Shown here in pieces: positions 11,556 to 36,694 of a DNA stretch of 64,000 bases (position 1 is its first letter; every line of letters starts with the position of its first letter). The DNA comes from Macrostomum hystrix (lineage: Eukaryota; Animalia; Platyhelminthes), in NCBI GenBank assembly GCA_950097015.1, contig CATNEN010000011.1:5828001-5892000 (forward strand). The letters run 5' to 3'. A model generated the notes under the pieces. It was not told where the DNA came from and searched no databases. It saw only the letters and a program-made list of their open reading frames with translations. The position numbers and the translations under genes were made by a program.

Positions 11556-12212
11556 GAGAGAGGACTGACAAGTCAGAGACAGGACTGACAAGACAGAGAG
11601 AGGACTGACAAGTCAGAGAGAGGACTGACAAGTCAGAGAGAGGACTGACAAGTCAGAGAGAGGACTGACAAGTCAGAGAGAGGACTGACAAGTCAGAGAG
11701 AGGACTGACGAGTCAGAGAGAGGACTGACAAGTCAGAGAGAGGACTGACGAGTCAGAGAGAGGACTGACAAGTCAGAGAGAGGACTGACGAGTCAGAGAG
11801 AGGACTGACGAGTCAGAGAGAGGACTGACAAGTCGGAGAGAGGACTGACAAGTCAGAGAGAGGACTGACAAGTCGGAGACAGGACTGACAAGTCGGAGAG
11901 AGGACTGACAAGTCAGAGAGAGGACTGACAAGACAGAGAGAGGACTGACAAGTCGGAGAGAGGACTGACAAGACAGAGAGAGGACTGACAAGTCAGAGAG
12001 AGGACTGACAAGTCAGAGAGAGGACTGACAAGTCAGAGAGAGGACTGACAAGTCAGAGAGAGGACTGACAAGTCAGAGAGAGGACTGACAAGACAGAGAG
12101 AGGACTGACAAGACAGAGAGAGGACTGACAAGACAGAGAGAGGACTGACAAGACAGAGAGAAGACTGACAAGACAGAGACAGGACTGACAAGACAGAGAC
12201 AGGACTGACAAG
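11556..12212. repeat. 20-bp minisatellite (AGAGAGAGGACTGACAAGTC)n
   Basis: Direct tandem repeat. Confidence 0.95.
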
Positions 12213-12748
12213 GCATAGGGACAGAAAACATGTCAAAGACAACTCTCAACAGAACATCCGTTGGTGACAGCTCTAAAGAAACGCATATAAAAACAATCCA
12301 GTTATTAATTTAGAAAGTAACGCACTAAGCTAAGCAATGAACTGCTGATATATGATGATTATATGATGATTAATAATACTACGAAAGGCACCGCTCATTT
12401 TTGCGCATTTTTGGACGAAACAAAGACAGGGTTTTAAGAAACAAGAACAAATTATCGCTTAGAACCTTTGGGAGCTAAAAAACATAATTTATAATCTTAG
12501 TAAAATTGCACTGAAAGTTTTTTGTTTGATAATTGTACTCTCCGTATTATGTCATTCAACTCATCGAGGATTTAGAATGAAGTTTTTATTAAACAAAAGT
12601 CAAAGGCTATAACGTTACAGAGCAAAAGAATAAAGGCGTTATTTAAAAGAAGCAAAGTATTTTAGTAGATTAATGGGAGAGCAGAGCAAAAAAAACACGG
12701 AAAGACACGGCGGACAAACAAACAGGCGGGTTCTAGCGCACAGCTGCA

Positions 12749-14464
12749 TCAGCTGGCTGCCTTATAGAGCAGACGTTTTGGCGCCTTGGAGTCTGACTGC
12801 AGGGCCATGAGCAGGTCGCGCAGTCCAATCCTGGTGAGCTTCGGCCGCTTCGCTGTCAGCCCGCTGCCAACACCGCCGACTCCACCAGATCCGCCGATGC
12901 CACCGGCTGAGCCGCCGCTGACAGAGCCGGAGCCGCCAGCGCCGAAGAAGGGGCGCTTCCGACTGCTGCCGAAGATGGCCAGAGCGGCAGTCTCGTTGGC
13001 CTTGTCCTGCTTATCCTGCTCGTATTCGGCCTCTTGCAGCTCCTTGGCCTTCTGCTTCAGCTTCTGCTGCTCCGGATCGTCCAGTTTGGCGCGCGATTTC
13101 GCCGCCCGTAGGAGCCGCTCTCGCTCCTCTTCGTCTTTGCGCTGCTTCTCCTGGGCGTCCAGGCCGGCGAGGAACTTCAGGCGCCTGGACGGGTCGTCGG
13201 TGCGGGCAAGGTAAGGGCAGGCGGCTGCCAGCGGCTCGGCCCGGTGCTCGGCAGCTGCCGCGGCGCGTTCAAGAATGCCCGTTAGGCGACGCTCGACAGC
13301 GGCGGAAACGAAGGCAACGGCGCTGTCTGAGAGGTCAACGAGACCGGCAGTTCGCGCGATGTTCAGCAGTCGTCGACGAAGGGAGCCAGAGCCGAACAGC
13401 ACGCCTTGCTCCGGGCACTGACGAACTGCTGACGTCACTGCTGAAGACACGGAGGCAACTGCTGATGCAGGGACGGAAGCGGCTGACGCAGCCAGGGACG
13501 ATGAGGCTGATGACGCTGTGTCCTTCTCGGAACGAATATTGACACCGCCCAAAGCTTTGACGTCATTAAAATCGTCTTCGCGTTGCAGCGATGCCTGCCC
13601 CGACGCAGGCGCAGATGTTGGCGTTGCTGACGCAATCGTTGTTGGCGCTGAAGAATTCGCCGAAACAATGGTTGTTGCCGAGACAGCCGGGGAGGTAATA
13701 ACAGAAGGCGGTAGGAGAGTGCGGACCATGGGTAATGCGGTAGGCTGCTTCTGGATCTGCACCGGAGCTGGCTGAGTCAGCTGGGCTGGCCTGTGGACAG
13801 CTAAAGTTGGCTGCTGCTGCTGAACAGAGTCAATTCTGACCAGCCCTTGGCGATAGGCCCGCCTATAATTAGGCAGATGATTGTTTAAGAAGCCTAGCAA
13901 CTGCTCCGAGTTAGTGCTGGATCCTAGCGCCTCTTTCAGCTGGTCAACAAACTCTGGCACAGGTAGTCGCTCTTCCACAACGTCTCGAATCAACTGGGAC
14001 ACCCGCTGTGGCCTGCTTTCATCCTCGCAGTTCTCTCTTGATAGGCGCTGGAGTACGTTTAGAAAATTCGAACACTTGGCTATGCTCTCATTGCTACCCA
14101 AATTGACGTTGGAAGCAACTGGGATGCCGGTACTGGCTACACCGCTGACAGTAACGTGAGACACAGGAGGCCTTTGCTGAATAGGCTGCTGCGGCTGGTG
14201 GATGGGTCCAGCCGGCCTAGCAATGATCTGCGGCCCCGCGTTGCCGTGTACAAATACATACTGCGGCATGCCCGGATGCCTGAGCATAATATTTGGCCCA
14301 ACTGTGAATTGCTGGCCTCCAGCCATGCGAATCACTGAGCCGCCGCTGGCCGCCGCAGCTGAGCCATCCGCCGGCCTGACTGGCTGCGGCGGCAGCTGCG
14401 GCGCCATTTGGACTAATCTGAGCTGGGCTCCGTTTGGCGCTTGAAAAGCCCGACTGTCGCCCAT
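12749..14464 (-). CDS. TAF4: TFIID subunit 4 (TAF4-like), 571 aa, single exon
   Basis: TAFH/NHR1-like segment KCSNFLNVLQRLS...FVDQLKEAL, histone-fold segment LRRRLLNIARTAGLVDLSDSAVAFVSAAVERRL, the characteristic RERLLRAAKSR...DPEQQKLKQKAKELQ and a C-terminal LLYKA. An in-frame stop lies upstream of the ATG, so an extra 5' exon cannot be excluded. Confidence 0.93.
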   Translation of the reverse strand: MGDSRAFQAPNGAQLRLVQMAPQLPPQPVRPADGSAAAASGGSVIRMAGGQQFTVGPNIMLRHPGMPQYVFVHGNAGPQIIARPAGPIHQPQQPIQQRPPVSHVTVSGVASTGIPVASNVNLGSNESIAKCSNFLNVLQRLSRENCEDESRPQRVSQLIRDVVEERLPVPEFVDQLKEALGSSTNSEQLLGFLNNHLPNYRRAYRQGLVRIDSVQQQQPTLAVHRPAQLTQPAPVQIQKQPTALPMVRTLLPPSVITSPAVSATTIVSANSSAPTTIASATPTSAPASGQASLQREDDFNDVKALGGVNIRSEKDTASSASSSLAASAASVPASAVASVSSAVTSAVRQCPEQGVLFGSGSLRRRLLNIARTAGLVDLSDSAVAFVSAAVERRLTGILERAAAAAEHRAEPLAAACPYLARTDDPSRRLKFLAGLDAQEKQRKDEEERERLLRAAKSRAKLDDPEQQKLKQKAKELQEAEYEQDKQDKANETAALAIFGSSRKRPFFGAGGSGSVSGGSAGGIGGSGGVGGVGSGLTAKRPKLTRIGLRDLLMALQSDSKAPKRLLYKAAS

Positions 14465-15884
14465 TTGCTGCTGCTGCTGGGTTGCTCTTGGCTGTCTGTT
14501 GCCAAGTACTTAATTGATTGTTGCTGTTTTGTTGAAACATATGAGACAGTATGTTTGTAATTTATGGTTTTTATGATAGATACCAAATTCACTTGACTAA
14601 TCTAAAAATTGACATTAAAAAATTGAAAAAATAACTACACTACTACAAGTAATATGCATACTAATTGATGTCTATTCGGTTCAAGCTCAGAGTTATCATG
14701 GAAATATATCACAACTTCAGGTTTTCAATATAAAAATCCAAATGCATGTAAATAAGTGATATCTCAAGTCTCAACTGATGACTGAATGACAGATATAGTT
14801 GAAATATGACAATAAAAAAGTAAAACTTTTGAAACAATTAATTCATATATTTAAATATAAACAGCAGTATTACACATACATATTCGATGTGTAATTTTAT
14901 GGTAAATGGCTTTTTAACCAATACATTGTCATAAACCAATAGTGCCATGGGTTTGCTTCCAAGCAGTGGAAGGGCTACTCAAAGGGCATTTAGATAGTGA
15001 TTCTATAATAAGCTATTGTACACATGCTTAAATGTTTAATTCCATAGAATAAATTTATCATCATGTGATTGAAATAATTTGCAAAAAGTCCTTTAAGCAA
15101 AACTAGAAATGATACAGGGCATGGGACACAATTATAATCAATATTTAGGTGGTGTTTTAAGATTTTGGGATTGACAATTGAAATTTGTAGACCAAGTCTA
15201 AAATAAAGATTTAATTAAGCTTACACACAATGTCTACAACCACAAATATCAGAATTTGGATTAAAAATTTGGCTCCAACCCCATGTATTATATTATCGTG
15301 ATCCTAAACAACTAGTTATTTTCAAATCAGAATACAAGATCTAGAAATATACAACCTGTTTTAAGATCACAGACAGTTAGTTAGGCCTATTTGATATATA
15401 GCCAAAGGACCTGTTTAATTTTTAATGCATACTTATTATCTTGTGCAATCTACTTTGTGCAACAACTTGTAGATGCTAACTACTTTGCATTTTTGGTCTG
15501 ATGACTAGAACAAAGTTAACAAGAAAGTTGATTTTAAGTAACCAAATTGCTTTAATTACTCCTCATAGTAGGTGGTAGGCCTAATATAATGCCTGATCCA
15601 ATCCACCAATGAATCAAAACATTTTTGGTTCATAACATACCATAGGAACTTCTAATGGTGAACTTTTTAAAAGTGCAATGCATGGCCCTGAATTGACACT
15701 TCCATGTGTCAATATAAATTATGCAGTTTTTGTATGAAAATTATATACTAGCCTAAGGATTAACGAACAAAATATGGATATCTCAATGTGCCAACTAAAT
15801 TCCTGATTGGTTAGATGTATTTTTTCTTACATTCTATGTGTACTTATCATACATGCACAACCTCCCAAATCTTAGCCAGCCAGG

Positions 15885-16715
15885 CAACTTAGTTTTTGCT
15901 CTATTTACGACTTAGTTTGCTCTCATTTGCAACTTAGTTTGTTTCATTGCTCTATTTACGACTTAGTTTGCTCTCTTTTTCTCTCCCCTTTTTCCTTTTC
16001 TTCACACCTTCCTTTTTTGTCCCTTGGTCCCCCCTTTGATTTTTTTGCACTTGGTCAATTGGTTTTTGCGACTTACATTGCTTGGCCCTCGTTTCACCTG
16101 GCCGGTTCGGCCGGGTGTTGCGCATGTATGGTACTTATGTACATAAATAATGTATATATTTAAACCATACTATATATAGCAATGCAAATTTTAAGTACTT
16201 AAAAGATATAGACCAAATGTAGTTTTCATAGCAAATATATATTAATATTTACTACTTTGATTGCTATAACCAGGCCAGACGAAGTTTAAAAAAAAATATT
16301 TTTAGGTTGAATTGGACACTCAAATAGCTATGTTGAGATATACCTAAGCTTAGAAGTGAGATATACATAGCTATCCAATGCTTTATAGCTAGATTGGCCA
16401 CTACTATATTTTTGTTTAACATATAGGAAATGACCTGGCCAACCCAGTAGACTCAAATTGGCTGGGGCAATTGAGGACCAAGTAAAGTAAGTCAACTGAA
16501 AATCAACTGAAAAAAGGCAAAAAATTAAAGGGGGACAAAGGGACAAAGAGGGGAAAGAAGAAAGCACAGAGAAAAGAAAAAAAACAGAGAGAATTGGAAG
16601 AGAATTGAGAAGAAAGAAGGAAACTAAGACATGTGAAATTTTGAATAAAGAAATGTATTTGAAGTTGTAAAAAGCAAAGAAATAAACGAAGTTGCAGATG
16701 AGCGACAACTAAGTT
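15885..16715. repeat. Degenerate long inverted repeat (foldback/MITE-like) with an internal GC hairpin
   Basis: 15910-15940 matches the reverse complement of 16684-16714 at 26/31. 16016-16037 matches the reverse complement of 16527-16547 with one mismatch and one indel. A 10-bp hairpin CACCTGGCCG-GTT-CGGCCGGGTG lies at 16095-16117. Confidence 0.55.
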
Positions 16716-17977
16716 GTAGTTGAGGAGAGAAGGCAAAATAAAGTGGCAGATGAGGATGTTAAGGGAAAACTAAGTCATAGATAAGGGAAAACAAAAGTGG
16801 CAGATGTAAGAATTGTCTGTAGTCCTTCAAGGAGGGCAAACTAACTACAATATTTATTTCATCTTTCCAAAATGGTTTGTTTGATGCCAATTGATGGGTT
16901 TATTGACAACAAAAATTTTACTAAATTTCTTTGCTCTAACTCACATATCCCTGTCTTCAGTTTTTCTTTTCTTCTTCTCTCTTTACTTTTTCTTTCTCTT
17001 CTACTCTCTGCTATTTTTCTCTCTTCCCCCCTATGATTTTTCTCTGCTTCTCTCTTGAGAAAAAAACAAAGTTTTAGTTAAGGGAAAAAAAGCTTGCAAA
17101 TTAGAGAAAGCAAAGTTGATAAGACAGATCTATTTATAAGTCATGAATTAGAATTAAAAAATGAGCCAAAAAGTTTGTTAACTTCCCAAAAAAGCAAACT
17201 GTTCTTTATTCTCTTTAGCAGACTTTGCTTGAAGGTATTAATTTTAACAAACAAAGGAATAATTTTTTTCATATGCATTGATTTCATATTATTGTTTAAT
17301 CAGATCTCACATCAATGTAGTCTATAGCTTTGACATACATATAACATAGCAGTCATACTATTGTAATAATCTGATTGCACTTTTCCTAAACCTCAAAGTG
17401 TGGCTTTGTGATAATTGTGCAGCATAAAGACCCTTGCATTTTTACAAGATGAAATCTTCCATAGTCTGATGATGAATCTGTTTCTGATTGGAAACAGTTA
17501 AAATTGCTAATAAACTAGTAACTAGTGGACTAAGTCATAATTTAGATTTGCAGCAGTGATTTTTTTTTGTTTCACATTTCTGTTTTCTATAGAAAACCCC
17601 ATCACAAAGTAGGCCTATTCACAAATTTGCATTAGCAATTAAAAGTGTATTTAAGCCTATCAAAATAATATGCTTCCACAATCCATGTCACATTTATAGG
17701 TTCAAAACAAAGTTGTACAGCTGGCTGAGATGCAACCTGGCGGAGGTTGCATATGCATGTTTTGGTTAATTAATATTTTTTATTAAAACACAAATTTACA
17801 AGTTATCTATTATATGTGACTTATTACCTTATGTTAAACTGCATGTTTATTTAGATTCTAAATTTGGGCATTGGTGTATATTTGTTTAAATAGCCAAATC
17901 AGAGTTTAGTTGGCAGTTTCAAATTCAGTCACATTTCAAGGCAGTTTAATGCACGATCAGACTGGTGACAAGTCAAA

Positions 17978-18904
17978 ATGGCTGGAATCAACAACGCCAT
18001 CGGTCTACTAGCCAAAGAACTTTGAAACAGATTGGAATTAGGACCACTAAGACATGTAAAAATACAGAAATTCACACCCAGCCAAGACATAAGGATCTGG
18101 CTGACAGCTTTCGACCAAAGGTGTGACACGGAAGGAATCGATGAGGACCACCGAAAGCAAGAGTTACTGGTCAATCTAGACCTATCAACTGCTTTTGCCG
18201 CCGTCCAAAGACTGAACCTACCGGAAGAACTCACTTATGACGAGTTTAAGGAAAGTTTAATTGAGAGATTTGGAAGACTGGGTAACTCCAGCGAATTCAG
18301 GGAAGAGTTCAGAGGTCGGATGCAAGGTCGTAATGAACCTACCGACGCATTTGCAGACATCCTGATTGAACTTGCAACCCGAGCCTTTCCGAACATCAAT
18401 GGTGAACAGAGAGAAGAGGAGGTAGTGGAGCAACTTATCAAGGGAGTCAGAATTCCAGCGGACACCCGTGAAAAGCTGATATTTGCCCAGCCCGCCAACC
18501 TCCAGGAAGCTCGTCGTATGCTGCGCAGGATCGAAGCAGCCTGGCATATGTCTCACAAATCAAGCGGTGTCTGAGCTGTTAAGAGTGAGGAGGATCGCCA
18601 GCTTGATAAATTTGATCTCATCATGAGAGAACAACAAATCGAGATTGAGAGACAAAAGCAGGTTATTCAAGAGCTGAAACAGCGGATTGAAGAACAACAA
18701 CAGTCACAGCCACAACCGCTGATAAGCCAGCAATTTCAGCCCAGATATCCTGGAAACTCACAGTACCGACCCATGCAGGGACCGCATAACTATGCCAACA
18801 GCAGGGGCAGAGGTGGTGGTCAGCCTGGGCCAATGAGAGCTGGACATCAGTACAGTGTGAGTCGTCCACCCCAGTCCCACCGGAACCCGGCCTCGGGAAA
18901 CTGA
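17978..18904 (+). pseudogene. gag: gag (capsid-like domain plus coiled-coil and Gln/Gly-rich tail) with two in-frame TGA stops
   Basis: ATG at 17978 is in frame with ORFs 18032-18574 and 18623-18904. TGA at 18023-18025 and 18572-18574 interrupt one frame. Gag-like motifs include WLTAFDQRC, YDEFKESLIERF and FRGRMQGRNE. Confidence 0.75.
18895..18904 (+). promoter_or_regulatory. -1 ribosomal frameshift slippery heptamer GGGAAAC followed by the gag stop
   Basis: G GGA AAC TGA (Ser-Gly-Asn-stop). The pol ORF starting at 18913 is in the -1 frame and is open across the site. Confidence 0.75.
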
Positions 18905-19071
18905 GTGCCAAGGTGCGGATGAGGCCACGCCCCTCCAGTCAAGTCCCAGCAAACGTTCAGGCCTCCCAGTTTCGAATTCCGTCCCAGTACAAGTTTTGCT
19001 ATCCTCGCAAAACGGTACCTGTCTGGAAGGCATGTAAAAACAATGCGATCACACATCATGTGATTCCAACA

Positions 19072-19335
19072 TCACCAAATGCGTTTGCGTTACTAGCACC
19101 CAATGCGTCAGCACCCAATGTGTCAGCACCCAATGCGGCAGCACCCAATGTGTCAGCACCCAATGCGTCAGTACCCAATGTGTCAGCACCCAATGCGTCA
19201 GCACCCAATGCATTAGCACCCAATGCGTCAGCACCCAATGCGTCAGTACCCAATGCATCAGCACCCAATGCGTCAGCACCCAATGCGTCAGCACCCAATG
19301 CGTCAGCATCCATTTCCTCAGCTCCCAATGCATGT
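19072..19335 (+). repeat. In-frame 15-bp repeat (GCACCCAATGCGTCA)n encoding (APNAS)n upstream of the protease
   Basis: About 16-17 units read directly inside pol. Confidence 0.9.
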
Positions 19336-22300
19336 GATTTTTCCAAAATTGAGAGAAAATCCTGCAAAGCAAAAATGGCGATAAAGAAATTTGCCCCCAC
19401 AGCCAAAGTGGAGCTGACCAAGCTGAATGGCTATGAAGCAGTTATCACTGGAAGTGTCAAGAACCAGTCCGTAGACTTCCTACTAGACACTGGAGCTAGG
19501 AACAACTTCCTTAGCAAATCGACATGGTCAAAAATTTTCAAACCAGACCAAGTTCAAGAGACCAACAAGAGAGTATCCACATTTGATGGTACTCAGGTAC
19601 AACTAGAAGGAGAAGTAACAGCTAAAATGAGATGTGGCGACATCGAGTTGGAAGTGGAATTCTTGCTTTGTCAGCATGACTGTGACGACATTTTGGGAAT
19701 GGAGTTCTTTCTTAGTCACTGTGAAAGCATCCACCTTGCTAAGGGCATGTTGGTACTGAAGAGAGGTACCTGTGTTCCTATGAAGTATACTCGCCTGCCA
19801 GTTCGAGTTTGCCGGGTATATACCCAAGAGAGAGTTGTAATTCTGGCTAATAGTGCACTCAGAATTCCAGTGAAACTCGCCAGAAACAGTGAAGCCAACT
19901 ATGGCACTCCTATGACCATCGAGACTATTGGAGATGGAGTGAGAACTAAAGAAGTAACTCTGGAAATGGCACCGACTCTGGTCACGATGCAAGAAGGAGT
20001 TGGAATCATTGAGATCGTGAATCAACATGCAGTCGATGTCACCCTGTCGAAGTCAGCACTAGTAGGATTGGCGAAACCCATGAAAGTGCAAGAACTTACC
20101 TATTGGCAGCAGTCCATAGAGGCAGAAAGTCGACCTACCGGACGTGTGAATCAGACTCTGACAACAGAGGACGAGTGGATCAACGAAATAAACATTGGCC
20201 CTGAATTGGATGAAGAACAGCGGAAAGCTGTGATTGAATTAATAAAAGAACACAGAGAAGCATTTTCACAGGATGACTTGGACAAACCTTGGGTTTGACT
20301 AATCTTGTTACCCATGAGATTTTACTTAATGATAAGACGCCAGTAAGAATCCCAACTCGTCGGATTCCTCCCCATCTGCAAAAGCAAGTAGACGCGCAAT
20401 TAGACGACATGTTAGCAAAAAACTTAATTAGGCCGTGTTATTCACCATATTCAACACCTTTAGTGATTGTACCAAAGAAGGATGGGACAATTAGAATCGT
20501 GAGTGACTTCCGAGTGCTCAATTCTCGAGTCAACTACGTGCCATATCCGTTGCCAAACATTCAGGAAACATTCTCACATCTAACAGGCAGTGAGTATTTC
20601 AGCAGCCTGGATCTAAACTCAGGATATTGGCAGGTGCCAATCAAAGAAGAACATAAGCACATGACAGCATTTTCAATGCTAAACAGAGGACAATTTGAGT
20701 ACGAAGTAATGGCGCAAGGACTATCGAATGCCCCAGGGACATTTCAAAGGCTAATGAATTTAGTACTGTTAGGAATTCAACACAAGTTCGCCATGTCTTA
20801 TGAAGAACAGTTTGAAGAACACCTAGAACATCTGAAAGAAGTATTCAAAAGATTAATTACAGCAGGATTGAAACTGAGGGCAAAGAAGTGCAACTTATTT
20901 CACCATGAGTTAAAGTACTTAGGGCACGTCATCGGAAGAAATGGCCTTCGTACTGATGAGGCCAAGATAGAAGCAATTAGAACATGGCCGAAGCCCAAAG
21001 ATGTGAAAGAACTGCGTAGCTTTCTTGGTCTATGCAACTACTATTGCCGCTTTGTAAAGAATTACGCTGAAGCAGCTCATCCACTTTTCCAGCTGACCCG
21101 GAAGGGTGTCCAGCAGTTCCAGTCTAAATGGAATGAAGTGCATGACCGAGCTTTTGAGTCTCTGAAACAACGAATGATGTCCACAGAAGTCCTAGCATAC
21201 CCTGAATTTGTCGACTATGAAAAAGTAAGAATGGTCTTAGACACTGATGCCAGCGATGGACGCATTAGAGCCTGCCTTGGCCAAATCCAATCAGACGGCA
21301 TAGAAAGACCAATTGCTTATTTCAGCCGTGCGATGAAAGAGTCAGAGAAACGTTACCCCATTACCCGGAAAGAACTGTTAGCCCTTGTCGATGCAATGAA
21401 GCACTTCAGGTTTTACCTGATTGGAAAACGATTTTTGGCCCGAACAGACCATAAAGCGATCCTTTGGCTATTGAAACAGACGGAAGCAACAGGGATTCTT
21501 GGTTGTTGGGTGGAGCGCCTAAGTGAATTCCAGTTCGATCTTGAACATAGAAGCGGCGCAAAGCACTCCAACGCGGACAGTCTGTCCAGAAGACCAGCTG
21601 AAACTGTGGAAGTAGGCCAAGAGGAGAATCAAGGAGAAACCCCAGCTACAACCCCACCGACAGTCGAGAAAGATAACCCGGCCCAAGCTGTCAAGAGTGA
21701 AAGTGTGGAACAGCCTAGCAAAGATGGAGAGACCCAGACTCCGCATCCCATTGCAAGGATCGAGTCAATTGTCTCCGGTAATGAAGGTGAAATGAGCAAT
21801 CAGGAGGCCTCGAATGACTCATGTGTACTACAGCCGAGTCTGCCAAATGATCAATCAAATCATAAATCAGCCACACCTAACTCAGAGAATTTCAAATGTG
21901 AAGCCCTACTGACCAATTTTCTACCCATTCCCCTGAAGCGAGAACAGATTCTGGAAGCCCAAGGAGCTGACCCAGTAATCTCAAAGCTGATTGAGTGGAA
22001 GACTGAAGGTCTGACACACCTACCCATCACACGTAATGTGTCCCCCGAGTTAAAGAAAATGAGTAAGAAATTTGACGCCATGAAGATTGACCGCGACATA
22101 TTGCTCATCGAAGAAGATGAAAAATGGAAAGTAGTGTTGCCATCATCACTGGACAAACAAGTACTAAGCGATCTACACAGCAGCCCCTTAGCTGGACATC
22201 TCGGAAGAGATAAGACAACCCAGAGAGTCCGTGAAAGATTCTGGAGACCAGGCTTGAGTACTGCTGTCGAAAAGTACATTGCTGAATGCATTCCGTGTCT

Positions 22301-23875
22301 GGAAAGCAAAACCAGCAATTACATCCAGGCACCGATTCAATCTTTTCCCATCAGCGAGCCCTTCTATCGCTGCCATGTAGACATTATCGGTCCTTTATCA
22401 AAAGAAAGTAAAAGAGGACATAAGTATGTACTGACTGTGGTAGACAGTACAACACGTTACCCCTTTGCTTTTCTGATCAGGAATCAGAAATCGGACACCG
22501 TAATCAAAATATTGCAAGAACGAATATTCTCCGAGTATGGCCAATGCCATTGGATACATACTGATAACGGAAAGACTTTTACCAGCAAACAATTCAAGGC
22601 ATTCTGCAACCTTTACAACTTGAAACACACATGCACCACGCCGTATCATGCGCAGAGCAATGGTCTTGTAGAAAGGTTTAATAAGCAGATCAAGTCCATT
22701 ATTACTTGTTTGATCAAGAAAGATCACAGTAACTGGGATTTGATGATTCCTGCCGCCCTAGTTGCTGTCTGCACTAGTGTCAACAAAACAACTGGTTTTA
22801 CACCCCACTTCCTGTTGTTTGGCAGAGAAGCTGTAATGCCGTTAGACAGCCAAATCAAAGAAGCAGTCGAACATGCCGATTATCCATCGTACATCGCCAA
22901 ACATGCTGAAAGGTTAGTCGAAGCTCAGGAGATTGTGAAAAGAAAACTAGAGGGAGTAGTCAGCAAAAGGCAGATAGCAGCAGAAATTAACAAACCACCG
23001 AAAGAAGTTCCCATCGGATGCCTAGTGTTAATTAATAACCCACAACTGAACATTGAAGAATCACACAAGTTTCATCGGAAGAAAAGATCCGCCTTTCGAG
23101 TGCTCAACAAGATTTCAGAGGTAGTTTTTTGAGTGCAGAAAGAAGAGAATGGAATTCGTAGTGGCAACGTAATGTTAGTCCACCGAGACAATTTAATGCC
23201 CATTCCTAATTCAACCACAGATGTAACAAATAAGGGAAGCCAGGAGGGCCCCTCAGCCAGCAAGAAAGGACAGAAAATTAAGGGAAGCCACCCCAGAGCA
23301 CAGAAACAAATAATTTGCATTGAGTCGGAAGAGTCATCATCGGAGGATGAAATTAATTGGCATTGCGATATCCGCAGCAAAGCCACAGAAGAAATAAATG
23401 AAGAAACAGAGGAATCTGCGATTGAAGAAGAATCTGAAGAGACGGACAATGAAGAAGAGCTTATTAACGAAGAAGACATCGAAGTTGGAGCTGAAATAGA
23501 AGTAGGAGAAGAATTATCTAGTGAAATTGAGCCGGCAGTAATTGCAGAGGCTGAGTCAGACAATGCCGAGATTGAAAGAGAGGGCGGAATAATCGATAAG
23601 GAGCCAACACACACAGAACAAGAAAGAGAGGCTGCCCACCCCACTCAACGATATAATTTATGACAACAACCAAGGGGTACGGCACAGTGTGGTTGTCACC
23701 TAAAGAGGTTATTGTCCACTCTCACCTTCCTAGGGAGCATTAAAATCTAAGCCAAAGGAAAGATAGGGTCAGTGTACATGAGGGGGGAGAAAAGAGAAGG
23801 GGTTGGTGCGACCAATGGAAGGCCTGGAGGCTACGAAAGGAAGGAAACTATTATGTAACCCCCTCTTCAGAAGTC

Positions 23876-23883
23876 TATATAAA
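23876..23883 (+). promoter_or_regulatory. Candidate TATA box (TATATAAA) upstream of hairpin cluster A and the extra ORF
   Basis: Motif match only, 118 bp upstream of ATG 24001. Confidence 0.3.
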
Positions 23884-23916
23884 CAGAGCCCCTGTGGCAT
23901 AAAGAAGTCAATTGTT

Positions 23917-24005
23917 TTCTCGTATTGAGAATTCCTCAAGCTCCTCAATTCGTATTGAATTTTGAAGCGACCAGCAAATCACATCAATCTCGTACTGAGA
24001 ATGAT
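23917..24005 (+). other. Cluster A: three stem-loops with GTAYT loops
   Basis: TTCTC-GTATT-GAGAA (23917-23931), AATTC-GTATT-GAATT (23947-23961) and ATCAATCTC-GTACT-GAGAATGAT (23983-24005, one mismatch). Confidence 0.8.
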
Positions 24006-24556
24006 CAGGACCGTATCACAGGAGGACATCGCTCAGCAATTAATGTTAAGCGATAGCAAGAATGAGGAAACAGACCTCGTAGACTAATTGTTTCTAAGTG
24101 ACAGTGACAATGTCGCCCAAGTGTGGGAACGAGAAGCAGAGAATGAAGCACCCATGAAACAGCCAACCCGGCCTAAGCCTGTAGGAGTTACAAAGAAGTT
24201 AATCAAGCAAAAGGGGCCGGAGGTGCGTACTGCGCCTACCGTGCCAACAGCTTTGGTAAAATCACAACCGCTACCCACGGTTCTTCAGGCAGTAAAGAGT
24301 TGGCCGATATGAAGATAAACGATCGCCACCGAAGCGAGAGGAGATTGCACAAGTAATCAATAAACTACAGCGCAATTTCTTGCCTGAACTTGCAGTGGCT
24401 GCATGGCGGCGAGCCACACAGTATGCTCTACATTCATTGGATTTAATCGTCAAGGGATTTGACGTATTAAAGATGCGCACCAAAGCAAGCTGGATCGGCC
24501 AAGAGGTCGGCTGGCCCTTCAAGGATCAACTTCCCGAAGAATTTGCGATGGACTAA
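24001..24556 (+). pseudogene. Degenerate accessory ORF (ORF3) downstream of pol, about 185 codons, unknown function
   Basis: ATG 24001 (MIRTVSQEDIAQQLMLSD...), a TAA at 24085-24087, ORF 24088-24312 in the same frame, then a +1 frame open to TAA 24554-24556 (...EEIAQVINKLQRNFLPELAVAAWRRATQYALHSLDLIVKGF...EEFAMD). GC content is coding-like and drops right after the stop. Confidence 0.55.
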
Positions 24557-25066
24557 AATTTTATGTAAATTGGACTTTCTTTTTAGTATGCCTATCCCCA
24601 TGCCTATACCTATATCTCTGTCTATGTTTTATCTTTTATGCCTATGCCTATGTTTTATTCTTTGTGCTTATCCTATGTGCTTTTATTTTTGAGTGTTTGA
24701 TTATTTTTTCACTTTTATTTAAAAATCATCTTAAGGGAAGCCAGTTGAGATAGATAGAATTTTATTAGTATTGTTTTAAACCTTTTTGATGTAAATAAAT
24801 TTTGTTAACGAATTATATTACAAAATGTATTCTATTATTATACTAGGCGCTTTTATTTTTCATATGGTAAATAGTATTTTCCTTTAAAAAAAGAAATTAA
24901 TTACAACAATTGTTTTATTTTTTCCCGCCACCTCAAATATTTCATATAAATAGGAGTGATTTTTATGTCCTCAAAATATACGCTCATCTTTGGCGATCAA
25001 ACTAGAAAGCCATATTAACTAGTGCTCTCTAAAATTATATAACTTAGTGTTAATTATTTAAAGGTT

Positions 25067-25326
25067 CTAGAACTGTATTAGTTCTGGTAACGAGGAAGTA
25101 TACGGTGATCATAGTGTTGAACTGTACTAGTTCTATACTATTATCTAGGGTATATCAACGTATTGTTGATCTAAAATAAAGACGTATTGTCTTTATTACT
25201 TAGGTTAAATCAACGTATTGTTGATCTAAATAAGACATATTGTCTTATTAGTTTGGATATATCAACGTATTGTTGATAAAATTAAGATGTATTGCCTTAC
25301 TGTTTAGGGTGTATTATCCTGGACAG
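25067..25326 (+). other. Cluster B: nine consecutive stem-loops with GTAYT (one ATATT) loops
   Basis: Hairpins at 25069-25085, 25111-25141, 25154-25170, 25175-25197, 25209-25225, 25229-25249, 25260-25278, 25283-25299 and 25300-25326. Stems are 6-13 bp with G-T pairs. Confidence 0.85.
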
Positions 25327-25840
25327 ATAAATATAGTGAGATCATACATAGTGTACAGCCAGTAAGGTATAAATATACAATTCCCGACTGTATTAAGAAA
25401 GAATCCTCACTCCTGATCGTGACTACGGGGCAACTTCAATCCACCGCGTAAAGCCCCGGAAGACTGGAAATAGAGTTTTAGGGAGTGCCTTACCGCTCGG
25501 GCACATTTAGCTACCATAGTAACACGTCATTCATGTGATACTAGGCCTAATAGACAAATATTAGAAACTAGGATAAATAAAACCGCACGGCGAGAACGGC
25601 TTTTACATATTTCTTGAACAAATAGAAAAATCTAAGCTACAAGGCGTACCTAAAAGCTAGGTCTAGTCTAAGCTCAGATGGCGCAAAGATACGATTGTAA
25701 CCATCCCTATGTGAATCAGCCGACAGTCTCATAGTTTAGAATTTAAACAGAATAATGAACTGAACAGATTTGGCATTGGCGATATACCACTTAAATTCCA
25801 ATGGCTAGTTAGCGGGATTTATGACTATTTAGTAAGTTCA

Positions 25841-28800
25841 CTAGTAAGTAAGAAGACTGCAGTCTTTTACGTGGGGGCGAACATAAAGGGATTTCTACTC
25901 ACTGCTATATTCTTTCCTGCATTTAGATGCACAAAAATGCACAAACGGAATATGCACTTGTTTTAATAAAAGCTATTCAAAAATTTCGACGCAAGCACTT
26001 TCTGCAAGGAGGTCGTTTTATCAATAAAAAGAAAAATATTTTTCTCTGAATTGAACCTTTCCCTTTAGGCTCGAATTGAACAAATGTATTCGCGAAAACC
26101 AATGAAGGAACTATGGGTGAATAGAGACAGAAAGGTGGCATATGATATAAACAGCATAGTAAAGCATATTTCCGCTTAAATCGCAAGTCGACGGAAAAAC
26201 GGCTCAAACAGAGGAACAAAATGCTCAATAAAAGAGTCAAAATCGTTTGGAAGCATTTAGAAGCTATATGGCTGCCTTGTGCCCCTAATCATACACACAA
26301 CTGCAGTAAACTATGCCAATTTCAAGTTACACCACTACACTGCAATTGACGAAACAATGCAACAACTGGACTGCAATCAAGGCAACAATTCAACAAACAG
26401 AGTGCAATCAACGGAATGATTCAACCACTGAAGTACAATCAAAGCAATTTAATGCAAAAAATGTAATGCAAACGGAGCAGCAACATACTCGTATTAATTG
26501 CAATCTAAGCAAACGAACGCAACTGACATGTCAACAAGGGAACGTACGATATGAAATACAAACAAGCCAGCCATTTATTAAACTTGAATGAAATTCCAAA
26601 TTACTGCATGCAACTGGAATACAATCAGCGAAATTTACACAATTAAAAAGCGATTCGATGACTTGAAAAGTGGAGGCTATGCTATATGCACAGCATATAA
26701 GCAGCAATTAAATGCAATTTAAATGCAAAATTAAATTGACTAGGCCTATTGAGGGCTGGCTAAGACATTTTTTTAATTAGATTAAAACTAATCTTACAAT
26801 AGCACCATTATGTGCTAGAGCAAATTTATAAAGGAGAATAATGATTCATATGACTGGCCAAGTACATTAAAAGCAATTAAGTATAAATGCATAGAAAAGA
26901 TAGGGAAAATATTACACAGCTTGAAGCAGACTTTTTGACCTGAATTTAAATATCTAAGATGTCATCACTTGCACAAAATTTGTGATGACTGTAACATAGT
27001 GTTAATTCAATAAAAAGGCATCCTACGTATTGAACATTATTAATAAGACTTTGTAAGAGAATATAAATGCACTTTTTGTGCATATGGCATATACTTTCGA
27101 ATACTGCAAGATGTGAGTCAATAAAAGAGTATAATCGACATTATCAACACGACAATGAAGACCGACATTTAAATGCGCATCAATTACATTATCCATGCAA
27201 AAGTAAAAAAACCCAGACAAATCATAGGCCTGCGCGTGTGTGATGTGACAAGCGTCAAAACACGTCCTGAAAGGCGATAATGTTCAAATAAAAAGTTTCA
27301 ACGACACAAAGACGTGCGCGCTAAAAGGAAATACAACATAAGGTGATTTCTACTGACTGCTACATTCCTTCCTGCATTTAGATGCACAAAAAATGCAGAA
27401 ACTGAATATGCACTTGTTTTAATAAAAGCAATTCAAAAATCTCGACGCAAGCATTTTCTGCAAGGCGGTCGGTTTATCAATGAAGAAGCTTAAAAAGTTG
27501 CAATCATTTAGGATTTAATCATCAAAATGAAAACCGTTTGCCAAACGGCAAGCAACCAAAAAAAGTTTAACTACCACAGATACTGTTTATCATCAACGGA
27601 ACTTGCAAAATCTTTCAATAGCAAATAACGGATGCTTCAAAAATGATAGTGTCCAAAATTTGTACCCCTTACCTTCATGTACTCAATAGGATCCAGACAC
27701 GACACACGTTAACCAATCTAGCCGTGTGAGATGTCGTTGGAATGTAGACAACATTCCGCGTCGATTGAAGCCATCCGCGCTTAAAGCCATCAGGAATTCG
27801 CAGACTTATACACAAAAGTACACACAAATATGCACAATGTACACGCTGTGCATAATTACATTTTCAGGTACTAATCCTAACAGGTAATACGTGTATCGAC
27901 GGCAGTATTTTTTCCATATACCCACATGGGATGTGCATCTTTAAATACCAAGCTCAATGAGTATTACGCCCTTTTCGCCTCCAGCCGTAGGTTTGAGCAC
28001 AGCAAAGTCTGCACCGGTCCCGAACCCGACCTTTCACCAGTCTGGGTGGACTTTCTCAGCCCGGGTAGGGCCGAAAGGTGCGCGCAATATCTTGTTAGAC
28101 GCAAAACAATATTTCCAGTAGATTGACGCATCATTCGACAAATTCGGAGCCGGATTTCGCGAAATGCGCGCGTCGAAAGGAGAAAAATACAAATTTTTCA
28201 CGAAAGTGTATGTGCACTATTATGTACTTTTAATACACTTGCGATGTACTTTTATCAACGCCGACTCAGTATGTCATGTGCCCTAATGTTGTGCATACTA
28301 CATCGCTTGCGGCTAAGCTGTCCGACTGTTTGTCTTCGAAAAAAAAATTTTTGACTCCACCAAGGTCGGCATGCATTTTCGAGAAAACGGCAAAAATGCA
28401 CGTTTTGCACTGCATTTCCCAGTACTGCTTGATAACCGTGCATTGCATAGAGTCGCCTTGCAAAGCGTCGTGTAGCAGGCATCCGTGCCGAATTTTTGAC
28501 ACCACTTGCGCAGTGCAACTACCTGCCATTCAGCTGCAGTACCGTGCAGCACGCAAGTGTAAAATCTGGCTGCGCCATATTTTACACTTGCTTCATCAGA
28601 TATCAGGCGCGCGGTACACTCGCAGTCCATTGAGTCACACCTCGCTGGAAAGAACTCACCGAGTAGAAAAAAAAGACACCACCCGCGTGACAATCGATTC
28701 AGCCCTTGGGGAGCTGCGCTGGAAAATGTAACCCAAAAAAGCAGTACCTAAAAGTATGTTTTTTGCACTTTTATCATACACTATGAGGAAATTGAAAAAT

Positions 28801-29219
28801 CGCTTTCCTGCCTCGCCTGGGCCAGGCCTGCCCGCAACTTTTGTGTCTCAACTTTTCTCCGTGCCAGAAAAAATGTGCGCTGGAAATGAGTTTGCGTAAA
28901 ATCGATTTCCAAAAAAATGGCAGTTTTACGTTGCCATGGCAACCCTCACGGGTTGCCATGGCAACCAACCGCCATAAATCGGATAACCCTATAAGTTACC
29001 TACCCAACGACACCACCCGCGAGGCAAACGGTTGAGGCAGTCTCAAATGGCGCCCAATATGCATTGAAAATGCGTGATTTTCGAGGTGTTTTCTATCTCA
29101 CTACGTACGCTGGATCTTAGGTGGGGCTCACTCCGATTTCGCCCCTCGGCCTCTACCGAGGCCTCGGTGCTCGGCGCTTCGCGCCTCGCGGCTCAATACT
29201 ACGTTCGCCCCCAACTAGT
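25841..29219 (-). mobile_element. Non-autonomous Helentron/Helitron2-type (HINE-like) element
   Basis: 11-bp sub-terminal inverted repeat TGGGGGCGAAC at 25872-25882 and 29203-29213. On the minus strand the 5' copy is followed by a GCGAAGC hairpin (29173-29185) and a 14-bp palindrome (29155-29168). The 3' copy is followed by palindrome AAGACTGCAGTCTT (25853-25866), 8 nt, then CTAG and T. An internal direct repeat of about 145 bp links 25881-26025 and 27336-27482. No transposase ORF. Confidence 0.65.
28930..28966. promoter_or_regulatory. Two perfect RFX X-box-type palindromes GTTGCCATGGCAAC
   Basis: Exact 14-mers at 28930-28943 and 28952-28965. Function is not shown. Confidence 0.45.
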
Positions 29220-31707: not shown

Positions 31708-34700
31708 ATGCAGCAGTGGAATAATAGCTTTCAAGCTGCCGGCTCTTGGTATCCACAACAGCAGATGCCACAGATGGTACCACAGATTATGCCCCAAATG
31801 GCCCAATATATGCCTCAGATGCCACAGCAAATGTCTCAGATGCCTCAACAAATGTCTCAGATGCCTCAACAAATGGCTCAGATGCCTCAACAAATGTCTC
31901 AGATGCCTCAACAAATGTCTCAGATGCAGCAGCTGATGTCTCAGATGCCACAACGTGTAGTGCAGCAGCAGCAGCATCAGGAGCAGCTAAGCAAGCAAAC
32001 TGAACAAAATAAAACAAAGCAACCGCCGTCGCTAATGTCAACAATATTGCCCAGTTCAGTTGGCTCTAGTGTTGGAGGCTCCAGTGTTCTAGGCTTAGGC
32101 ATGCCCACTGCTCCAGCTACTCAGCCAGCTATTGCAGCGGGTCTCTCAGCCCAGACGAGGTCTCCAATTGGTTTGGCTGGGGGTGGCGGCAGTCACCCGT
32201 TCGCCAGAGGTCGAGCATTCAATGCGGCTTCTAATTTGCCTCCCGCGGCGGCGGCGTCCTTGTCTGCTAGTGCGTCTTCGACTACTCCGCCATTGTCATC
32301 TCCTGTGGCATCCACGGATTTGCCAAATCAGTATAAGCAGCATCAGCAGAAGAGGAGCCTGTCCCCACCTATTGCAAAGCCTCACTCAGCTTCATCATCT
32401 TCTGGCATGCTTGATAATGCGTCCCCAACTAATTCTAGTCATCCGCGTGGCCTTCCACCGCCTTGCACAATGGTCCGGCTAGATACTACTCGTAAGGATT
32501 TCAACATCCTGCTGGATCAGAGCTCCGGAGGTGGCATCAGTTGTGCAACTCTGTCGCCAACCGCTTACGCCGAAGATCCATTAGACGAAATGGAATTCGG
32601 TTGCTATTATATCTGGGGCACCGTGCTAGGGAATCACGGCGTTACAGAAGGTCGCACCTACTATGAGGTGGCCTTCGCTGAGGCCATCAATTCCTCTCAG
32701 GCGCCGTTCACTTTTGCCTGCTTTCGCGCCGGCTGGACACTAGCGCCGCGCTTCTGCGATTGGCACCTACCTGGCGACAGGAAAAACACTTGGTGCTACT
32801 CTTCGTATGGCGCTTCATTTAACGAGGGTCAAATGTATTTAGACTACGGTATCGAATTGCATACGGGCGACAGTCTGTCTCTGCTCATTGATGTTAAATC
32901 GTTAGGCGACTGCAACGCCACCGCCGAGTTCAGCGTAGAGATTCGCTGTGAAGATGGCAGAAAATTTGTGGGGCCAAGTCAGCAGATTTTCTATCGCTGT
33001 CTGGCTAGCGACGGCAAATCTAGGCTGGCCTGGTTTCCCCACCTGGCTCTCATGAACTGCAGGCTAGACTGCAACTTCGGCGCTATGCCAGTGGCCTTGG
33101 ACGAGAGGATGAACGCTGGAAGGCTTATTCTAGGAAAGATGCCAGCCAGGTATGGGCGAAATCTTGTCTGTGTGTTGGATTTTGGGAAAAAAATATTTAC
33201 ATATCGGCAGGATAATTTTTATATTCTGGTTTTTATTAGTGTAGAAAACTTTGATTCTGGGATATTATTAGTCTTCTCTAAGTATAATTCTAGATTTTCT
33301 ATCTGATTTTTGATACATATCGGGTAGAATCAAGTAGATTTCCGTCAAAATGCTGAAGGGTAACTTCCTTTCTAATTGATAGTCTATGGCATAAAAGGTT
33401 GTTTGAGCTTCAGCTGCTTCGTCAAAGTCTAACAAAATTTTTATAGGGGTTAATTTTGTGTGAAAGCAATGCAAAAAAGGCAAAGTTCGATGATATTAGA
33501 ACGAGAGTAAAGAATAGATCACAGATACTATAATAACTTATTATAGTATCTTATTAACTTATTTTAGTTATTATAGTATCTGTGGAATAAATTAGAGTTT
33601 AGAAGAGTTTAAAACGAGAAGTTAACAGTTAAAGTTATTTCAACTCAGTGTAATTAAGTTACTCAAAGCACCGTTATTGAGACGTGCATTTAGTTTTGAT
33701 GAAAAATTCGAGTGGTTGCTAAGGCCTCCACCTTCAGTTTTTTATCCGGATGGATTGCTTTAGATGTCGTCAATCTACCCCTGATTTTGGTTTTTTCTAT
33801 ACATATCGGATAGACTTTGTTACACCAATCCATCATTAAACAGAGCTCTGCAGGCAAGTGAGTACGCCGATCCGGTCTCAAGCGCTCTGCCGCCCAAGCC
33901 TGAGCTGCATCTGACTGTCGGCCTGCCATCTAGCGGCAAGACCTACTACGCTCGCACCCTGCCTTATACTAGGCGAAGACTGCTAATTGGCATGGATCAG
34001 CTGGTTGAGATGACACTCATACCTGAGCGGGGCATCACTCGCAGCATGGGCCAAGATGTGCATACTAGAGACCGGGTCAACTACTTTCTGTACACCTACG
34101 GTTCCAGGATTATGTTTATGCAGGCGGACGAAGCGATCGCAATGGGGTGTGATGTGCTAATCGATCAGTGCAACGTGTCCATATTTACACGGGCAAAGCG
34201 GGCTAGGAAGTTTGTGGAATCCGGCTATTCGGTCACTCTGCATGTTGTTCATCCAACTCCGGCTATGATGGCCGAGTATAAATCTAAACTATTGGCCGAA
34301 TTCGGACTGAGAGGCTCTGAGACAGCTAGGCTACAATTGCAGGCTAATTTCACTTTGCCTACTGAGCAGAGCGATCAGGTGCGTTTTTATGGCGCTTTTA
34401 TGGTTTCCAATTTCAGGATGCCGAAATTGGCTATTTAAAAAAATTTGCACTCGTATAAGTAGGATTATTGTTTCTGAGTGATGTCTCTGTGTGAGGTATG
34501 GGATCAATGTGTGAGGTATGGGATCAATGTGTGAGGTATGGGATCAATGTGTGAGGTATGGGATCAATGTGTGAGGTATGGGATCAATGTGTGAGGTATG
34601 GGATCAATGTGTGAGGTATGGGATCAATGTGTGAGGTGTGGGATCAATGGGTGAGGTATGGGATCAATGTGTGAGGTATGGGATCAATGTGTGAGGTGTG

Positions 34701-36365
34701 GGATCAATGGGTGAGGTATGGGATCAATGTGTGAGGTATGGGATCAATGTGTGAGGTATGGGATCAATTAGTAAGGTATGGGTTTAATTTGTAAGGTATG
34801 TGATCAATGTATGAGGTATGCGATAAATATGTGAGATATGGGATCAATGAGGGAGGTATGGGGCCAATAAGTAAGGTATCACATTAATTTGTCAAGTGGG
34901 AATCGGAATGTGGCGATACGTAAAGTATGGGACCTATAGGTAAGGTTTGGGACCTGTGGGTGAAGTTTGTAATCCATGTAAGATGTTTGGGATTAGATTA
35001 GGTTTGGGATCTATAGATTAGGTTTGGGATCTATAGTTTAGTTTTGGGATCTATCGATTAGGTTTGGGATCTATCGATTAGGTTTGGGATCCAGATCTGG
35101 GATGAAATTCGCAGGTCTCTTTAGATTATATTTGGTCGCTGGCCTCTGGGTGACGGGAGATTTTCGCTAGCACTCACCATCTAGCTACACTCCGAACTGA
35201 CCCACCCAGGGCGTGGACATTCAGTACGTTCGCAGCAGCCGCAGTCAGCTGAGCAACGCCATCAAGAAGCTCATCGCTGAAGCTCAGCAGGCTGGCTACG
35301 AGGAGCAGTCGCCAGATGAAATCGACGAATACTTTCTGGAGCACTGCAACAAGCTGGGCATTCCCATAGCCAATCCGTTTGTGCCCTCGCTGAGGCGGTT
35401 AGATAGCCACGCTGAGCAGTTGTTTAGCCGGCTGAATAGCGCCGCGAAGGCGCGACAGCAGCAACGGCAGGTGGGTTACAGTCCCGTGTGAAATTTCCAG
35501 CGCGTTTATCTGTAATGAAGCCTTAATGAAGTAATAAAGTCGTTTTCGCTGTATATTTTAGGAGGAGCAGCAGAAGATTCAAGAGAAACAGGAGCTTCAG
35601 CAAAAGCAGCAGCAGCAGCAGCAGCAGCCTGTAACATTAAACAGTGCGTCTGTACTAGACCGCATCAATTTCGATGCTTCCGTCTTGAAAAATGTCCTGC
35701 AGTCAGTGAGTGCCTCTAACAGCCAACGCGAATCCATGGTGCAGCAGCAGCAGCAGCAGCAGCAGCAAACGCAGCCGCTTCAAACGTCGGCCTCATCTGG
35801 CCTGTCCCGTTTCTTACTAAATGCAACAGCTCAGCAGCAGAAGCAGCAGCAGCAGCAGATTTTTCAGTCCCAAGTGGCCCCTGCTGCTGCTGCTGATGCT
35901 GCTGTACCAAGCTCTGTTCCTGTTTCTGCTCCTCCAGCGTCAAATGCAATCAGAGTAGAGGATTTGACAGACAATCTGCTAGATGTGCCGAATCGCCTGC
36001 AGCAGCAAAGGCAGCAGCTGCCTAGCGCCGCCTCCAGCCTATTCCCAGCCTACAGTTCAGCCTCGGCAAAAGACGCCACCGCGGCATCTCCAACCGCAAT
36101 TGTTGAATGCTTTGTTGACATCTGCCGGCTGAGGGAGCCAGCTGAATTGTTGGCGCAGCTGCCAGCTAGCTTGAGGTTTGACTTGTTAACTACAGCTAGG
36201 AGGTTAGTTTCCATTGGCGATTGCGAGAGAGCCTCGCCTGCGTCTGGCAAGCCGCAGCACCAGCAGAGGTCTGCTCAGCCTTCAGCTGACCGCCCTGTCG
36301 GTGGCGGCGGTGGGAGCGCCTCCGGTTCGTCTAGCTTTAGTCTAGCCGCATTCACTCGCAATAGC

Positions 36366-36431
<66 letters not shown>

Positions 36432-36593
36432 AAGCAACGAGAGACGTCCTCCATAGGCAGACGATCCTCTGGTACTTCGAAACGATCCAGGTCCAGGTCG
36501 CCAACTGGCAACGGTCAGCGAGTTCGCAGACAGCAGGATCGCTTCGATTCTAATAGTGGCGGTCATAGCCAGTATTCGCATAGGAAAATCTAG
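31708..36593 (+). CDS. hnRNP U-like protein 1 of 2 (Gln/Met/Pro-rich N-terminus, SPRY, AAA_33-type P-loop, polyQ tail), about 1089 aa
   Basis: Exons 31708-33149, 33844-34378, 35210-35470 and 35562-36593 have GT-AG ends and matching phases (3270 nt). SPRY: VLGNHGVTEGRTYYEV, FRAGWT, GDSLSLLID. Walker A: VGLPSSGKT. Walker B-like: VLIDQCNV. Confidence 0.8.
34487..35095. repeat. Intronic 20-bp minisatellites (GTGTGAGGTATGGGATCAAT)n grading into (GATTAGGTTTGGGATCTATA)n
   Basis: Direct tandem repeats in intron 2 of the first hnRNP U-like gene. Confidence 0.9.
36364..36432 (+). repeat. (CAG)n with CAA interruptions encoding a polyglutamine run
   Basis: Read directly in the last exon. Confidence 0.95.
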
Positions 36594-36694
36594 TAGTTTA
36601 ATGATATGCCTCCGCATTGCTGTTTTGCATCTTGTGACTTTGTTTCGCTTATTTTTTGTTATTTCCTTTCACTAAACTAGCATTTTAGTTGAAT

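Follow-up and report, generated by a model that had tools for sequence, protein, structure and literature searches.

Iron-responsive elements occur singly in a 5' UTR and in five copies in the 3' UTR of the transferrin receptor, with one controlling protein. Tandem repeats in the U3 region of LTRs usually act as DNA enhancers, and dimerisation sites usually lie in the 5' leader. Elements bound by Roquin have stems of free sequence, 6-8 bp long, and a loop of the type YRN, of which YAU is the most effective, and tandem elements cooperate (PMC6294493). A closing G-U is the one stem change that significantly lowers the activity of these elements, and a TNF element with a 9-bp stem is non-functional (PMC6294493). 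In some single-stranded RNA viruses, packaging signals are described as numerous stem-loops with stems of free sequence and one short loop motif in common (PMC7793301).

The window, i.e. the whole 64 kb stretch of DNA analysed here, contains on the plus strand at 25067-25326 a series of short inverted repeats with five near-constant bases at the centre of each (Table 1). A sequence-only reading had described this series as nine stem-loops with an invariant GTA(T/C)T loop, making 12 copies with those of a cluster A. The letters agree with that description, and eight of the hairpins fold as proposed; the ninth (B8) is a decayed copy without an independent fold. The loop is nearly constant rather than invariant, that of the hairpin with its loop at 25237 (B6) being ATATT. 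Three more copies lie at 23917-24005 (cluster A), and a possible thirteenth, hairpin X, is present at 24221-24237, which may be a chance occurrence.

Table 1. Features of the carrier element and its hairpins, in window positions; the TATA-like boxes, the polypurine-tract-like run and the poly(A) signal are candidates read from the sequence.
Feature	Position	Strand	Basis and remarks
gag remnant (broken)	17979..19443	+	72% identity to L001 Gag by tblastn, with outer bounds 17990-18676
pol remnant (broken)	19444..23663	+	protease, reverse transcriptase, RNase H, integrase; Pfam, tblastn
TATA-like box, pol-ORF3 spacer	23876..23883	+	
A1	23917..23931	+	5-bp stem, loop GTATT; -3.9 kcal/mol, z -3.4
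A2	23947..23961	+	5-bp stem, loop GTATT; weak, minimum-energy fold favours another register
A3	23983..24005	+	4+4 bp stem around one mismatch, loop GTACT; -6.5 kcal/mol
ORF3 remnant (broken)	24061..24557	+	at least one in-frame stop and at least one frame change; tblastn outer bounds
X	24221..24237	+	6-bp GC-rich stem, loop GTACT, within the ORF3 remnant; -9.1 kcal/mol
B1	25067..25087	+	8-bp stem, loop GTATT; -8.6 kcal/mol, z -3.7
Polypurine-tract-like run	25092..25098	+	putative; resembles the L001 polypurine tract
B2	25111..25141	+	13 positions, one mismatch, one G-U, loop GTACT; -10.7 kcal/mol
Candidate 3' LTR, ~757 nt	25123..25879	+	likeness to the L001 LTR start and repeat boundary
52-nt tandem unit	25139..25298	+	3 copies, two hairpins each; TRF, repeat search
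B3	25154..25170	+	6-bp stem, loop GTATT
B4	25175..25197	+	9-bp stem, loop GTATT; -8.1 kcal/mol, z -6.2
B5	25209..25225	+	17 nt identical to B3
B6	25229..25249	+	8-bp stem, loop ATATT; -7.6 kcal/mol, z -5.4
B7	25260..25278	+	7-bp stem, loop GTATT
B8	25283..25299	+	decayed B4/B6-type copy, no longer folds; -0.5 kcal/mol, z -0.65
B9	25300..25326	+	11-bp stem, 3 G-U pairs, loop GTATT; -13.7 kcal/mol, z -5.0
TATA-like box, proposed LTR promoter	25368..25375	+	putative; 42 nt past the array
AATAAA, candidate LTR poly(A) signal	25576..25581	+	putative

All 13 hairpins are sense-oriented. Their loop columns read G (12) or A (1), T (13), A (13), T (10) or C (3) and T (13), i.e. four departures in 65 positions. 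The pair adjoining the loop is C-G in nine hairpins, U-A in three and U-G in one, and each of the six pairs outward of it is made up of three to five pair types. With a strict scan rule (GTAYT loop and at least four contiguous flanking pairs), plus-strand loops start at 25075, 25124, 25160, 25184, 25215, 25267 and 25311 inside the array, and at 23922, 23952, 23992 (cluster A) and 24227 outside it; further strict matches in the 64 kb number just three on the plus strand and three on the minus strand. Shuffled 200 times, 23900-25330 contains on average 0.055 strict hairpins and never more than one, compared with ten in the real sequence, and a chance origin of the hairpins is excluded. Among the hairpins of the window whose loop is 5 nt long, no loop is as frequent as GTATT or sits on as many distinct stems: it occurs in seven hairpins with five stems, while the next loop reaches four. 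In an unbiased count of perfect hairpins the array region comes second in the window, behind a plain minisatellite at ~57.7 kb.

Folded singly, the eight array members reach -4.5 to -13.7 kcal/mol (z -3.0 to -6.2), and the array as a 276-nt piece has a z of -5.9, its opposite strand one of -6.4. ViennaRNA gives the triloop form for four hairpins and the pentaloop form for seven, the remaining two not folding as proposed. Taken as a stretch of 111 nt, cluster A has no fold beyond the level of shuffles (z +0.37); the stems of its members A1 and A3 are related. The only canonical AATAAA of the array (25175-25180) is fully paired in the 5' arm of B4, and variants of it occupy the equivalent positions of B6 and B8.

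The placement of the motif in a gypsy 3' region also holds: the carrier is of the Ty3/gypsy type, and the motif occurs in no part of it but the non-coding 3' one, always in sense. A covariance model of the motif, a scan that had been proposed as a check, found no further copy on either strand of the 64 kb, and in this window the motif is confined to that part and that orientation. No Rfam family matches 23000-27000 up to E = 10, the sole hit being an unrelated snoRNA model with 16.4 bits against a threshold of 45. A separate DNA transposon with palindromes had been named as the case that would speak against the motif; no terminal inverted repeats bound the array, none flanking 25067-25326 within 24500-26100, and an identity of the array as MITE or DNA transposon was rejected on that ground. 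The motif pattern had no hits in a metagenome collection, and in a viral collection one 17-mer matched at 54 isolated, scattered places and nowhere as an array, a number at chance level. No tRNA-like features were found.

Within the array, the stems belong to four families (B1/B2; B3/B5/B7; B4/B6/B8; B9), and cluster A adds two more, giving six, or seven. The sequence-only reading had counted at least five unrelated stems, a number that is reached when cluster A is included (six) and missed in the array taken alone (four). The core of the array consists of the three copies of the 52-nt unit, and B1 and B2 are covered by a 16-nt repeat 49 nt apart (repeat search). Five of the nine array copies are therefore duplicates, and four founder stems are left; the claim that tandem duplication does not explain the array fails for these five copies and stands for the four founders (six with cluster A).

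The 17-nt hairpin shared by B3, B5 and B7 is identical across the three units, whereas the whole units are merely 73-81% alike. Compared with B4, B6 has lost one base per arm and its stem stays perfect, and the G-to-A change in its loop replaces a G-U pair by A-U. The 5' arm of B9 is the counterpart of linker sequence in the 52-nt unit, and yet GTATT is once more presented there on a stem, of 11 bp. When the 13 hairpins are aligned, 86% of the cells are paired; shuffles reach 53% and slid controls 31-48%. Two-sided changes are seen in 45 cells. Because the hairpins were picked for pairing, the 86% is a description and not an independent test. Loops are kept far better than linkers, which together with the matched deletion in B6 indicates constraint on both pairing and loop sequence. 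As had been claimed, this is a genuine hairpin motif with a fixed loop and differing stems, the near-constant loop being placed on six stem families: the hairpins exist and are not due to chance, stems and linkers are much less well kept than the loop, and pairing is kept via changes in both arms.

The array is carried by a Macrostomum element of the Ty3/gypsy type that is broken and truncated at its 5' end. According to Pfam, its longest open pol frame holds reverse transcriptase, RNase H and integrase, and the preceding frame holds the protease; the domain order is that of Ty3/gypsy (protease, reverse transcriptase, RNase H, integrase). The best protein matches of pol are Ty3-type polyproteins of M. 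lignano with 70%, 58% and 53% identity, and the pol of the window has no exact match on record. The gag remnant has two in-frame stops in its aligned part, and its C-terminal third is unalignable; the pol remnant shows one frame change relative to the single frame of the closest relative, the family L001, and at least one in-frame stop. These stops and frame changes, together with those in ORF3, mean that the copy is dead. At 19095-19331, a 15-nt unit is repeated ~16 times in the gag/protease frame and encodes (A/S)PNAS-like pentapeptides. An LTR pair was found in the window neither by self-BLAST nor by sensitive local searches, and no primer-binding site of the relatives' type lies near gag; the 5' LTR is therefore missing and the copy 5'-truncated.

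The third frame, ORF3, encodes an orphan protein of roughly 290 residues that the L001 family also has; Pfam and database searches with it found no family and no homologue. Its identification as env, as in an errantivirus-like gypsy element, was rejected, since it has neither a Pfam family nor relatives in the databases. A third frame of ~260-290 residues follows pol in the window (24061-24557), in L001 (14475-15349) and in L002 (13848-14675). Cluster A is located in the spacer between pol and ORF3, 35-120 nt past the TATA-like box at 23876-23883. This box may be the internal promoter of an ORF3 mRNA, judging from its sequence, in which case the motif would be present at both ends of the ORF3 message, in the leader as well as in the tail. 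In L001 a TATA-like box lies 89 nt upstream of the ORF3 start, and the similarity between the pol-ORF3 spacer of L001 and that of the window is not significant.

The LTR of L001 extends from 15637 to about 16366, as delimited with three further copies, and LTRs of this family are ~730 nt long. Its first 41 nt match the window at 25123-25162 with a score of 17, versus 8.7 +/- 1.5 in shuffles, and in whole-LTR alignments with L001 a start at 25100-25123 is the best among 37 offsets (z 2.2-2.3). A 150-nt direct repeat occurs at 25880-26031 and 27335-27488 (90% identity, 1456 nt spacing). The first copy of this unrelated repeat begins at 25880, where an LTR of 730-760 nt would end. This modest similarity to the L001 LTR and the repeat boundary at 25880 are what would place the array in U3. 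On the map that we lean towards, B1 would lie just before the polypurine run, B2 would straddle the LTR start, and B3-B9 would fill the first ~200 nt of U3. A map with an LTR start near 24826 and the array in R/U5 is kept as a minority one, its whole-LTR alignment being weak (z 1.1) and its proposed start unmatched; the one local match of this map is a TATA region at 24945-24963 that resembles that of L001 (13 versus 8.0 +/- 1.4). On either map, the array would belong to the RNA of the element.

The hairpin array is absent from all seven M. lignano loci of the three related families (70%, 58% and 53% pol identity). The L001 family possesses a single weak look-alike hairpin 48 nt past pol (13.9-16.2 bits, E 0.35-4), with a loop that is invariant in five copies. 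One of these copies has a pair-breaking change in the stem, and another has the same change and a gained closing pair; these changes neither clearly keep nor clearly break the pairing. The Gag of L001 ends in a CCHC knuckle. At 7735-24077, L001 is arranged as LTR-internal-LTR-internal-LTR, i.e. two tandem elements that share the middle LTR, with 99.8% identity. The U3 of another relative, L003 (15680-16005), contains tandemly repeated palindromic blocks just upstream of a TATA box at 16024, including two perfect 11-12 bp hairpins, and three hairpins whose loop is AAAA. We take these blocks to resemble sites of the MADS-box, CRE and AP-1 types, a resemblance that serves as a lead only.

Minisatellites with units of 15-46 nt abound in the window (1231-6235, 11404-12283, 34488-34862, 57600-58100 and others), one of them 5 kb long. 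The minisatellite at ~57.7 kb (57600-58100) has a 29-nt unit with the same 6-bp hairpin in every unit. At 28925-28965, the 14-nt palindrome GTTGCCATGGCAAC occurs twice, 8 nt apart, and forms a perfect 16-bp stem. A host gene is located at 31708-36600; it contains a glutamine-/methionine-rich repeat (21-nt unit, 31810-31954) and shares 66-76% identity with M. lignano proteins, a level which shows that the window derives from a Macrostomum species other than M. lignano.

The explanation that we favour, tentatively and as read from one decayed copy, is that the array serves a single RNA-binding protein as a multivalent platform of RNA hairpins. The hairpins would constitute a family-specific cis-acting motif read on the sense-strand RNA of the element, each of them a short stem of free sequence presenting five loop bases or, in an equivalent view, a U-A-Y triloop closed by a G-U pair, with a pyrimidine-purine pair next below it in the stack. 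With eight or nine copies in 260 nt around the polypurine tract and the U3 start, the motif would be present in the 3' untranslated end of every element transcript, and three further copies would be carried in the pol-ORF3 spacer, downstream of the putative internal TATA-like box. The likeliest partner would be a protein of the element itself, either the orphan product of ORF3 or Gag, whose counterpart in the closest relative has a terminal CCHC knuckle. Through such binding, the RNAs of the element would be marked for assembly into particles or ribonucleoproteins, or the fate of the ORF3 message would be set. That RNA rather than DNA is read, that a protein binds and what the binding achieves is inferred.

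Counted in favour of an RNA platform are the loop enrichment, the matched loss in B6, the rebuilt motif of B9, the common orientation of the hairpins and the Gag knuckle of L001; counted against it are the closest relatives without an array, the strand evidence, the z of +0.37 of cluster A and the probable U3 position. G-U pairs had been thought to work only on the plus strand, which the count does not bear out: five G-U stand against two A-C (p = 0.23, not significant), mostly from one hairpin, under a tally rule that treats G-U and A-C alike and is blind to strand. As this tally of 5:2 is not significant and the fold z-scores are equal on both strands, the strand evidence is weak. The hairpin arms have no common half-site. 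Variable complementary arms around a fixed, asymmetric centre that always points the same way favour a single-stranded reading, since a dimeric DNA-binding factor would leave the opposite pattern.

A more specific version of the RNA platform is possible but unlikely, namely that a flatworm Ty3-type lineage evolved an operator code of its own, with a fixed five-base loop on free stems, three copies in a leader and nine in a tail, read by the Gag knuckle or by the ORF3 protein. Such a code, if true, would be a natural counterpart of engineered coat-protein hairpin arrays, undescribed for this group of retroelements.

Among the alternatives, the one that survives best, a serious rival though we regard it as unlikely, is that the array acts as double-stranded DNA in the form of tandem factor sites upstream of the LTR TATA box, its hairpin potential being a side effect of palindromic sites. 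This agrees with the best map, on which B2-B9 fall into the first ~200 nt of the LTR and the array ends 42 nt before a TATA-like box, with the tandem repetition of the 3 x 52-nt core, and with the U3 of L003, which has tandem palindromic blocks upstream of its TATA box. Working heat-shock elements have been acquired in the promoters of M. lignano LTR elements (PMC12801592), and the identical 17-nt block of B3, B5 and B7 would be explained equally well by a protein that reads DNA sequence. However, the arms differ between types and the asymmetric centre is constant, which is the reverse of a dimeric factor site, and the array arms lack the constant factor sites or half-sites expected of a U3 enhancer. 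That each arm of B6 has lost a base would be pointless if DNA were read, cluster A lies outside the LTR and downstream of a TATA-like box, and 13 of 13 centres point one way. No canonical heat-shock element (pattern from general knowledge) is present in 23600-26000, which likewise counts against an enhancer.

We give somewhat less credence to a neutral origin, in which slippage or template switching during replication or reverse transcription produced a hairpin-prone minisatellite, and quasi-palindrome correction copied changes from arm to arm without any function. Such correction could yield the matched deletion of B6, and simple duplication accounts for five of the nine copies. Minisatellites are numerous in the window, that at 57600-58100 having a hairpin in every unit, and the copy is dead, with B8 already decaying. 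Arm-to-arm correction cannot protect loops, however, and the loop is the best-kept part of the motif, with 4 departures in 65 positions against a divergence of 19-27% between units. The same loop is placed on six unrelated stems, B9 builds the motif from non-homologous sequence, and the array differs from the plain minisatellite at 57.7 kb, where all units have one and the same stem.

Decay or silencing by a host factor of the Roquin/Regnase type is improbable. Under this explanation, UAY triloops in a 3' UTR would recruit a ROQ-domain protein, which would bring deadenylation or granule localisation to the RNAs of the element. The sequence-only reading had noted the resemblance to triloops bound by Roquin and Regnase-1, and the loop rule (YRN/YAU) does fit: with a G-U pair, once A-U, as the closing pair, ten loops are UAU and three are UAC. 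Stem length fits in part, about seven of the 13 stems being within 6-8 bp, all of them within 5 to 12 bp and several at 9-12 bp. The resemblance fails at the closing pair, which is G-U in 12 of the 13 hairpins instead of Watson-Crick and of the kind that lowers activity (PMC6294493). Moreover, a reader of shape would not keep the G and the last U invariant, and the element has no obvious gain from recruiting a decay factor. Loop-loop contacts that pair two genomic RNAs, or two ends of one RNA, are very improbable: the first four loop bases are self-complementary (GTAC and ATAT perfectly, GTAT with two wobble pairs) and retroviral genomes dimerise via intermolecular base-pairing (PMC5874298), but a 5-nt loop leaves scant room for a 4-bp helix, the probable position is U3 and not the 5' leader, and hairpins with complementary loops are absent elsewhere in the element.

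If the array is a true RNA signal, it would be the first clustered hairpin code with a fixed loop and free stems reported for a Ty3/gypsy-type element, and the motif could be scanned for in flatworm genomes for the purpose of annotation. It would offer a simple sequence handle on how an element discriminates its own RNA from that of the host, or on how host stem-loop readers are borrowed, and it would link the unexplained third frame of this family with a candidate RNA partner. If it is instead an enhancer in U3, or a minisatellite of neutral origin, the array exemplifies palindromic LTR repeats that imitate structured RNA.

Among the known systems, the U3 enhancer repeats of LTR elements, among them the heat-shock elements of M. 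lignano Ty3 families (PMC12801592) and the blocks of L003, are similar to the array in its probable U3 position and its tandem repetition. They keep their half-sites and vary the spacer, whereas in the array the spacer is fixed, the variation of the arms is compensated, and copies occur outside the LTR. The tandem decay elements bound by Roquin in UCP3 and TNF are, like the hairpins described here, small hairpins of free stem sequence with a triloop of the U-A-U type (PMC6294493). Further common points are the close spacing of several copies within a 3' untranslated region and, as the reading rule, shape plus a minimal loop requirement (PMC6294493). They differ from the array, in which the closing pair is nearly always G-U, the flanking loop bases are invariant and several stems are over-long; the Roquin elements number one or two copies, compared with 9-12 here, on a retrotransposon carrier. 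Iron-responsive elements, which together with packaging signals are the nearest analogues in function, share with the array a fixed loop on varying stems and, if the internal ORF3 promoter is real, the combination of a leader copy with a 3' array; their loop, bulge architecture and protein are different, and the ORF3 transcript of the present element is a deduced one. The packaging signals of RNA viruses are distributed genome-wide and were defined by selection experiments or particle structures, in contrast to the hairpins of this element, which are clustered in 260 + 90 nt and were recognised from the letters of the DNA. Like those signals, the array and cluster A combine one loop with six or seven stem families, an arrangement which in the viruses provides cooperative, multivalent contact with protein (PMC7793301).
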